A stretch of DNA of 64,000 bases from Octopus sinensis (GCF_006345805.1 NW_021837026.1:1-64000); one strand, 5' to 3'. Positions 4,065-5,692 are shown, counted from the stretch's first letter. Numbers and translations are program-made. Notes: generated from the sequence alone by a model not told the origin.

Positions 4065-4468
4065 AATATCACATCATGTTGACGTTAAAGAAATCTCTCC
4101 ATTCAGATGTGCCTCTGATATTTCTATTGACTTTCATCAATAAAGAAGACCATATATTCATAAGGCACATTCATTAATGCATCAACGACAAACGATAAGA
4201 AAATATTTCTTCTACGATGGAATTGATAGCAACATTCACTTGTCTTCGCTGTTTGGAATGTAGAGAAGGTGATTGCTTGGTTAATTAAGCTTGGATAAAT
4301 TTACAAAAGTTTTAACTGTTTACATCTACCGTTTTAGATATTAAGCAAGAACACACACGAAAGACACATAGTGTTAAATTATTCTCTGAAAATACTGAAC
4401 ACAGATATATTCATAGAAATGAAAAAATCATTATCATTGTGATACATATGAGAAATTAGTATCTTATA

Positions 4469-5692
4469 ATGAATGATTTAAGAAAACCAAACAAACCTGA
4501 TTCAGGTGAGAGGCCATATCACTGTGATATCTGTGGTAAGTCATTCTCTCAAAGAGGTTCCTTGACTAGCCACATACTTACACATACAGGAGAGAAGCCA
4601 TTTCATTGCAATACCTGTGATAAATCATTCTCTCAAAGTAGTTCCTTGACTATTCACGTACGTACACATACGGGAGAGAAGCCATATCATTGTGATATTT
4701 GTGGTAAATCATTCTCTCGAAGTGGTGTCTTGTTTAGACACAAACGTACACATTCGGGAGAAAAACCATATCATTGTGACATCTGTGGAAAATCATTTTC
4801 TGAAAGTGGCCACGTGACTAGGCACAAGCGTACTCATACAGGGGAAAATCCATATCACTGTGATGTCTGTGGTGAATCATTTTCTCATAATAGCTCTTTA
4901 ACTTATCACAAACGTGTGTTCATACAGGTGAGAAGCCATATCATTGTAACATCTGTGGTAAATCTTTCTCTCTAAATAGTAACTTGACTAAACACAAACT
5001 TACACATACAGGAGAGAAAGCATATCGTTGTGATATCTGTGGCAAATCATTCTCTAGAAATAGTAACTTGACCAGTCACAAACATATTCATACTGGGGAA
5101 AAACCATATCATTGCAATATCTGTGGCAAATCATTTTCTCAAAATGGTACCTTAACTTGTCACAAACATACACATACAGGAGTGAGGCCATATCGTTGTG
5201 ATATCTGTGCTGAATCTTACTCTCGGAGTGATGCCTTGGCTAAACACAAACTTTCACATACAGAAGAAAAGCCATATAAATGTGACTAGTCACAAACGTA
5301 TTCATACTGGAGAAAAAACCATATCCATGTGATATCTGTGGTAAATCATTTTCTCATAATAGTGATTTAACTCGTCACAAACATATTCATACATATCATT
5401 GTAATATTCATGGTAAATCTTTCATTCAAAGTGGTGAGTTGATTAAACGCAAACTTACACATACAGGAGAGAAAGCATATCCTTGTAATATCTGCGGTAA
5501 ATCATTCTCTTGACCAGTTACGAATGCATAACAGTGTCATATCTGCGGTAAATCATTCTCTCAAAAATCAATTTATCTAATCACAAACTTATTCATATAG
5601 GAGAGAAGCCATATCATTGTAATACCTGTGGTGAGTCATTCTCTCAAAAAGGCCACTTAATTACACATTTGAATATTCATACACAAGTGTAA
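4469..5692 (+). pseudogene. G2: disrupted C2H2 zinc-finger gene
   Basis: ORFs 4469-4975 and 4984-5289. There is a +2 (GT) insertion near 4915, a finger-core deletion near 5285 and further indels and stops. It ends with the family terminus ...IHTQV* at 5692. Confidence 0.85.

Follow-up and report, generated by a model that had tools for sequence, protein, structure and literature searches.

Decayed finger units at the N-terminus of an array-only C2H2 zinc-finger gene subfamily in octopus

Nine array genes and their shared upstream block

We analysed a stretch of 64,000 nucleotides (nt) from Octopus sinensis (GCA_006345805.1, contig VCDQ01005315.1, positions 1-64000), referred to below as the window, whose AT-rich DNA carries nine paralogous C2H2 zinc-finger (ZNF) genes that consist of a finger array only. 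These genes, named G1 to G9, were found through the leader ATGAAT..TTxA...CCTGAT...GGxGAGA, which occurs nine times in the window; its ATG is called ATG(0) here, and signed positions are counted from it. A sequence-only reading of the window had proposed that this start codon was created by a 1-bp insertion inside a dead zinc finger, and that the N-terminus had been rebuilt from decayed array units. The latter proposal was borne out by profile searches in both directions, as decayed finger units make up both the first 16 residues and ~107 nt of the DNA upstream of them, while the former can be upheld only in part.

The arrays are built from Krueppel-type C-x2-C-x12-H-x3-H repeats, of which 79 across the nine genes are intact by regular expression, and the unit consensus ends on its 3' side in ACA GGA GAG AAG CCA. 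Separately significant stretches number 14 in G9 (E 3.9e-83) and 12 in G4 for Pfam PF00096, and 15 and 13, respectively, for PF13465 (H2C2_2), which reflects linkers of the TGEKP type. The genes are given below with the position of ATG(0), the open reading frame (ORF) read from it in amino acids (aa), and the upstream block described further down.

G1, 619, minus strand: 206 aa read, running past the window start; block 941-1174
G2, 4469, plus strand: ORF 4469..4975, 168 aa, array broken by a 1-nt frameshift in a linker, fingers going on out of frame; block 4050..4278, non-finger DNA at about -410..-200
G3, 10755, minus strand: long ORF, 424 aa; block 10956-11201
G4, 20586, plus strand: long ORF, 406 aa; block 20104-20359
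G5, 28405, minus strand: disrupted, 31 aa; block 28605-28836
G6, 31424, plus strand: 265 aa, terminated by a nonsense codon in a linker; block 31020-31253
G7, 41241, minus strand: long ORF, 406 aa; block 41433-41686
G8, 48993, plus strand: long ORF, 423 aa, then a frame-shifted continuation at 50222-50884; block 48546-48802
G9, 56829, plus strand: long ORF, 436 aa; block 56409-56664

Between the five long ORFs, the ratio of nonsynonymous to synonymous substitution rates (dN/dS) of the arrays is 0.28-0.43. The arrays are therefore translated, and the 12-15 fingers that follow the leader are under purifying selection. For leader codons 2-16, dN/dS was 0.5-2.5 in 13 computable pairs, with two further pairs having no synonymous difference, and beyond M1, N2, D11, E14 and P16 the leader tail is under no detectable constraint.

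Among the 25 Pfam families listed for G9 and G4 (of 29 and 26 found, respectively), only C2H2 families appeared, with no match to KRAB, SCAN or BTB, and a 64-aa translation of the upstream DNA plus leader matched no Pfam family. Within the conserved 0.5 kb upstream, the genes thus lack the recognisable N-terminal effector domain by which KRAB-, SCAN-, BTB- or FiNZ-type genes are assigned.

What the paralogs do share upstream is a non-finger block of ~230-255 nt, preceded at about -405 by a conserved polypyrimidine tract and CAG. Among divergent intact genes the block is 80-85% identical, more than the fossil fingers described below, and at the loci examined a hidden Markov model (HMM) of the block matched once upstream of each leader copy, twice for G7, and nowhere else. 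Each of the three frames of the block contains stop codons, and its indels (23, 9 and 2 nt) include lengths not divisible by three, which rules out a coding exon in -410..-200; the block is probably a promoter or 5' untranslated region (5'UTR). In G7 the whole block is tandemly duplicated (41433-41686 and 41836-42087, minus strand), including a second F-2 region (see below). A 23-nt segment with TATAAA(T/G) at about -270 is present in G3 (about 10980-11005), G4 (about 20290-20315) and at equivalent positions in G7, G8 and G9, and is deleted in G1, G2, G5 and G6. Its loss coincides with ORF decay in G2, G5 and G6, and a tie between the two was considered and rejected: the O. vulgaris copy L008a has a 493-aa ORF and no such segment, L008b has the segment and is broken, and the ORF of G1 just leaves the window.

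Fossil fingers and their relatives in O. vulgaris

In a forward test, an 84-nt HMM built from the 79 intact fingers was run on 600 nt of upstream DNA plus the leader of each copy. In every copy it aligned -37..+43 with unit positions 1-80, taking 81 nt for 80 positions and hence including one extra nucleotide (+1), and about -107..-53 with unit positions 17-71. E-values ranged from 4.6e-9 to 5e-2 (5.8 kb searched) and scores from 9 to 28 bits; the maximum among 900 shuffled upstream sequences (580 kb) was 5.3 bits. In the reciprocal test, an HMM of the leader region (-110..+48) matched intact finger pairs at E 1e-17 to 1e-10, and in 54 of the 61 alignments of near full length the leader model exceeded the intact pair by exactly 3 nt. 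The resemblance of the leaders to the finger consensus, on which the earlier proposal depended, is thus significant at the DNA level.

Finger homology ends abruptly at unit position 17. Between that point and a conserved 'ttttag' motif further upstream lie 30-40 nt without finger homology, which scored like shuffles (z -1.1 to +1.0), and a third fossil there was rejected on these scores. The ~155 nt up to the first real finger therefore derive from 1.8 finger units, namely a 5'-cut unit, F-2, followed by a whole one, F-1. In G2, the tract is laid out as follows.

4332..4337, plus strand: 'ttttag', candidate 3' splice site ~130 nt upstream of the ATG, conserved, deleted in G9
4371..4416, plus strand: fossil F-2, partial (unit positions 17-71), matched by the unit HMM at -98..-53 with E 1e-3 (G9: 4.6e-9)
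4417..4431, plus strand: what is left of the GEKP linker joining F-2 to F-1; 15 nt cover 13 unit positions, hence two extra nt
4432..4516, plus strand: fossil F-1, 85 nt for the 84-nt unit, with Cys2 as Tyr, His1 as Pro and His2 as Asp; its 3' half is the translated leader
4448..4450, plus strand: a second ATG, ATG(-21), arisen from TGTGGT > TATGAG in the second Cys codon and closed by TAG at 4457-4459
4469..4471, plus strand: ATG(0), inside a 13-nt stretch that stands in for four F-1 helix codons

For this copy, the sequence-only reading had spelled out a fossil finger, TAT CAT TGT GAT ACA TAT GAG AAA TTA GTA TCT TAT AAT, then a single G, then AAT GAT TTA. The window contains exactly these letters, the finger part at 4432-4468, and the ATG is at 4469. 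The F-1 fossils of the other copies are:

572..656, minus strand: G1, ATG(0) at 619
10708..10792, minus strand: G3, ATG(0) at 10755
20549..20633, plus strand: G4, ATG(0) at 20586
28358..28442, minus strand: G5, ATG(0) at 28405
31387..31471, plus strand: G6, ATG(0) at 31424
41194..41279, minus strand: G7, 86 nt with the shared and a private +1, ATG(0) at 41241
48956..49040, plus strand: G8, ATG(0) at 48993
56792..56876, plus strand: G9, best preserved (50 bits by position weight matrix, PWM), ATG(0) at 56829

Apart from the +1, F-1 has lost most of its zinc ligands, the second Cys being Tyr or Phe, the first His Pro, Thr or Ala, and the second His Asp, while F-2 is without the Cys pair altogether. 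Both are thus homologous to the family's own unit and have suffered loss of ligands and/or frame, as befits degenerate fingers. The changes at Cys2 (Tyr/Phe) and His2 (Asp) occur in every copy, so these ligand losses are ancestral; the fossil fingers as a whole are 42-70% identical among copies.

Some further decay is private or shared by few genes. G4 has a 27-nt insertion of its own within F-2 (20470-20500), G1 and G2 have a 9-nt deletion in F-2 in common, and G1 carries an additional F-2 fragment inserted at about -258..-225 (839-879, minus strand). Decay has also reached the first translated finger in five of the nine copies, with the last His lost in G1, G4 and G6 (KHKCID) and Cys residues lost in G3 and G8. 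Together with F-2 and F-1 this forms an erosion gradient from the 5' end of the array.

The same state was found in O. vulgaris. Two loci on chromosome OX597842.1, L004 and L008, hold the same upstream block, the two extra linker nucleotides (+2), the +1 and both ATGs, with ORFs from ATG(0) of 41 to 493 aa, the long ones being 349-493 aa. Over parts of the genes they are 77-93% identical to the window and not collinear with it, and we therefore counted them as extra paralogs and not as orthologues. As six O. vulgaris copies share the fossil state with the nine window copies, the fossil and indel state is ancestral to the whole subfamily, which is a lineage-specific, array-only C2H2 subfamily of O. 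sinensis and O. vulgaris. One of the L004 copies (L004:18475) is dead and carries an insertion of ~365 nt, placed 4 nt ahead of its ATG, and a minus-strand copy in L008 shows an inversion after the block. A more divergent relative, the 67-aa protein P0127 (UniParc UPI0006958009), reads DANERKHIHRNGKKTIVVIYTTNYSLKMENLTKPKGCETREKPYSC, in which a single frame runs through the F-2 fossil, the shifted segment and the leader, and lacks ATG(-21). Searches with a leader-only profile returned just four short O. vulgaris models, three of which (L005-L007) lie in other clusters without block or leader, and a full-length protein search was dominated by vertebrate ZNFs and gave no octopus information.

The shared frameshift and two candidate start codons

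The +1 in F-1 is present in all nine window copies, as the sequence-only reading had stated and as alignment to the finger unit bears out, and in the six O. vulgaris copies; G7 additionally has a private +1 and a private -2. That this extra nucleotide puts the ATG in frame with the living array is a robust result. It is confined to the 13 nt that lie between S-F-S and L, where four hypervariable helix codons would be expected. Putting the extra base at +24..+28 instead scored better by 2-4 bits in G3, G5 and G8, and was rejected at a posterior of 0.00 in each of the best-preserved copies, G9, L008_10022 and L008_16545.

Which base was inserted was addressed with a position-independent PWM on these three copies and with codon pairs from 215 intact fingers (window plus O. 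vulgaris loci). The PWM posteriors for the extra base were 0.36 for G(+2), 0.55 for A(+3/+4), 0.06 for T(+1) and 0.03 for A(-2..0). When the G is removed, the helix codons become AAT AAT (C/G)AT, encoding N-N-H/D-L, and an N-N pair occurs in 8 of the 215 intact fingers (NNH or NND in 7). All other single-base removals give pairs (N-D, K-N, M-N, N-E) that occur in none of them. Weighing the codon-pair frequencies, which favour G, with the PWM posteriors, which do not separate G from the next A, we lean slightly towards a G that completed the ATG as the inserted base.

The competing origin of this ATG is that the +1 did not create it. An out-of-frame AAT-G.. junction would have pre-existed, and the next A would have been inserted (GAT>GAAT) by slippage in an A-run. 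The PWM, which in the best-preserved copies prefers A(+3/+4) to G(+2), speaks for this, as do AATG junctions in 9 of the 215 intact fingers, but the ancestor that it requires, AAT GAT (N-D), was seen in none of them, against 8 with AAT AAT and 7 with NND/NNH. We consider such an A insertion possible, if on the unlikely side, and an insertion that created the ATG would be the better of two readings, though unproven. Of the earlier claim, the part that stands is therefore that a +1 within F-1 brings the ATG in frame, while G as the inserted base is unproven.

A second question is which ATG serves as the start, since the earlier reading had spoken of a single start codon. ATG(0) is invariant in all 15 copies and usable in each of them, and G4 and G7 have no other start that could be used. 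Another ATG of the same frame is found 21 nt further upstream, in 8 of the 9 window copies and 6 of the 6 O. vulgaris copies. At this site, 70 of the 79 intact units read TGTGGT or TGTGAT and the fossils TATGAx; the change of TGT to TAT (G>A, Cys to Tyr) destroyed a zinc ligand and thereby made ATG(-21), which is in the array frame only through the +1. Its frame is open in G1, G3, G6, G8 and G9, closed by a TAG at -12 in G2, G4 and G5, and the codon is absent in G7. Under the scanning rule formulated by Kozak, a purine at -3 favours initiation, and a weak AUG can be passed by leaky scanning. All 15 copies have a purine at -3 of ATG(0), and all 14 copies with ATG(-21) have a pyrimidine at -3 of that codon. 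Translation would thus be expected to start mainly at ATG(0), with leaky scanning past ATG(-21).

It has to be weighed against this that ATG(-21) might be the functional start wherever it is open, in which case ATG(0) would be an internal Met at residue 8 and the start would have been made by the Cys>Tyr change and not by the insertion. As the first AUG of the ORF, ATG(-21) is where public models begin, namely those at window positions 31403 and 48972 (via L003), at L004:10001 and 13459, and at L008:5074, 10001, 16524 and 24465. Just one window ORF, that of G7, is matched exactly by a public call, however, and this call starts at ATG(0); look-ups of G3, G4 and G9 read from ATG(0), and of G3 and G9 also from ATG(-21), gave no record. 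Moreover, ATG(-21) is closed in G4 and absent in G7, each of which has a 406-aa ORF, it is missing from P0127, its context is the weak one in every copy, and the seven extra residues that it would add are not conserved. We regard its use as the principal start as unlikely. The notion of one start codon accordingly holds insofar as ATG(0) is usable in all copies, and has to be qualified by an in-frame rival that public models use.

The earlier reading had also described the upstream indel as 5 nt in place of the Pro codon and the two indels as compensating. Two extra linker nucleotides do lie between -53 and -37, where a PWM scan prefers -38/-37 and the A-run -49..-42, which is consistent with that description and fits two separate 1-nt events equally well. 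The arithmetic is likewise correct, as +2 and +1 sum to +3. There is, however, no sign of selection for compensation. If the fossil region had been translated when the frameshifts arose, with the ORF entered from upstream and the present ATGs as later starts, one could explain why G1, G3, G6, G8 and G9 have no stop in frame 0 between F-2 and the ATG, the other two frames containing 5-9 stops, why P0127 is annotated as a single frame through all three parts, and why indels inside F-2 measure 9 and 27 nt. Yet in that exon frame 0 has no ATG upstream of -21, and between 'ttttag' and F-2 the indels are 14, 15 and 40 nt, so that the frame to that site has not been kept. In the register after the +2, moreover, the finger consensus is itself open for ~15 codons, its first stop (TGA in CTTGACT) lying beyond the +1 site (read by eye, not scripted); the openness of frame 0 therefore needs no selection, and a second indel restores the frame by chance in one case out of three. 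Compensation under translation is in our view doubtful.

The sequence-only reading had named initiation in an upstream exon, with this ATG internal, as the outcome that would overturn it. Such an exon is common in ZNF families, many of which carry their N-terminal domain separately (PMC10547256), and the conserved polypyrimidine tract with CAG at about -405 and 'ttttag' at about -130 offer candidate acceptors. In G7, however, the last in-frame stop is a TAA at -21 with no AG between it and ATG(0), and no upstream exon can therefore be spliced in. In G3 and G4, each candidate acceptor is followed by in-frame stops, two of those in G3 lying just after 'ttttag'; the block is closed in all frames; and G9 has no 'ttttag'. 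Judged from these features, initiation in an unseen exon is very unlikely. That the resemblance is due to chance or low complexity, or that the genes are dead and the start meaningless, is hardly credible: G2, G5 and G6 are disrupted and G8 has a late frameshift, but the HMM E-values and shuffle control, ORFs of 406-436 aa at dN/dS of about 0.3-0.4 and O. vulgaris ORFs of 349-493 aa argue otherwise.

Several observations weigh against an insertion in a dead finger combined with a start at ATG(0). ATG(-21) is kept in 14 of 15 copies, and public models of both species start there where it is open. No pre-insertion copy, as the sequence-only reading had suggested looking for in other octopus C2H2 genes, was found among the window copies and O. 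vulgaris loci, clusters L005-L007 being without block and leader. Gene conversion among paralogs could inflate the count of 'independent' copies, and the PWM and codon pairs do not fix the inserted base with certainty. The in-frame TAG at -12 in G4 contains an AG in a purine-rich context and is formally a possible weak splice acceptor. Finally, the upstream DNA is rich in upstream ATGs (5-13 per 420 nt), which makes the 5' end of the mRNA uncertain.

Proposed origin, comparison with known systems and other features

With these points taken into account, we consider it likely that the genes descend from a 5'-cut array with dead F-2 and F-1 units, in which the +1 links the array frame to ATGs born by decay and translation starts mainly at ATG(0). 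We infer that an ancestral array was cut mid-finger at unit position 17 and that its cut end was placed beside ~300-400 nt of non-finger DNA, taken here as promoter or 5'UTR. F-2 and F-1 would then have lost their zinc ligands before the family radiated, while the linker gained two nucleotides and the four helix-specificity codons of F-1 gained one. This +1 joins the frame of the living array to two ATGs produced by decay, ATG(0) at the insertion site and ATG(-21) through TGT>TAT. Translation would proceed mainly from ATG(0), with some initiation possible at ATG(-21) where the frame is open, and in the predicted product 12-15 fingers come after a tail of 16 residues (M-N-x-L...P-D-x-G-E-K/R-P).

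Under this reading, the family offers a clean, datable case of 5' array erosion, F-2 being dead and cut, F-1 dead and frame-broken, and finger 1 degenerate in five of nine genes, in which finger debris has been reused as 5' leader, start codon and unconstrained N-terminal tail. As a kind of event this is ordinary; it implies no new mechanism and opens no long-standing question. For annotation, it means that the coding sequence starts within finger-like DNA at one of two AUGs 21 nt apart, on which current models disagree.

Relics of this type have been described before. In vertebrate KRAB-ZNF sequences, individual degenerate, non-functional finger domains occur, and in the 3'UTR of ZNF252 eleven complete and degenerate finger motifs follow the stop codon (PMC2865497). 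Like those relics, the octopus fossils are without Cys/His ligands, border a living array, can be recognised from their DNA, jump frame and are partly untranslated. They differ in their position on the 5' side, where they provide the 5' leader, the start codon and the initial 16-23 residues, and no KRAB or other effector exon is present. FiNZ genes are a lineage-specific ZNF subfamily whose members share a coding domain at the N-terminus, carried by a separate exon (PMC10547256). The octopus subfamily is likewise defined by shared sequence upstream of the array, but whereas FiNZ and KRAB genes share a coding domain exon, its shared block is non-coding and its N-terminus finger-derived.

In its tandem poly-ZNF clusters and TGEKP linkers, and in the organism group, the subfamily resembles the known octopus C2H2 expansion. 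Albertin et al. reportedly described this octopus-specific expansion of clustered C2H2 ZNF genes in 2015 (cited in PMC10547256), and as far as found that work reports no origin for a subfamily's N-terminus. When the literature was searched for start codons located within degenerate fingers, nothing specific came up. Relic fingers, N-terminally defined subfamilies and the octopus expansion are therefore known, and what is particular here is the 5' position and the non-coding shared element.

The O. vulgaris cluster at L004 also holds a ZNF of a different subfamily (L004:5001-6470, 489 aa; region L004:4941-5042). Its first ATG likewise falls within the recognition helix of a first finger that has decayed, one that is in frame and lacks one His (TRSYDCDICTKSFSRKSNLI followed by MNKQTHTGEK). 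Unlike the window genes, it shows no frameshift, and its Met, at helix position +6, may be internal, as a TAG 20 codons upstream could be a splice acceptor. Because this second subfamily starts in a comparable place, we tentatively raise a restart inside a decayed finger as a general birth route for octopus array-only ZNF genes, improbable as we judge it. A rearrangement would cut an array mid-finger and set the stump beside a portable promoter/5'UTR cassette, ligand-killing TGT>TAT changes and small indels in the dead fingers would yield in-frame ATGs, and the truncated array could then be amplified as a gene.

The remaining features of the window stand apart from the nine genes.

43451-45373: element of the foldback type whose long terminal inverted arms comprise 285 nt at 99% and further segments (~620 nt in total), 97.8% identical to O. 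vulgaris L004:166-2081, a non-collinear locus
63715-63999, minus strand: 3' part of a tenth ZNF gene, which begins past the end of the window
7607-8203, minus strand: ORF without Pfam match
33578-34198, minus strand: ORF without Pfam match
59476-60039, minus strand: ORF without Pfam match

The three ORFs encode 187-206 aa and are possibly derived from repeats or transposons. The latter two lie in or next to the GC-rich segments 34001-36000 and 58001-60000 (GC fraction 0.46-0.48 vs ~0.36).

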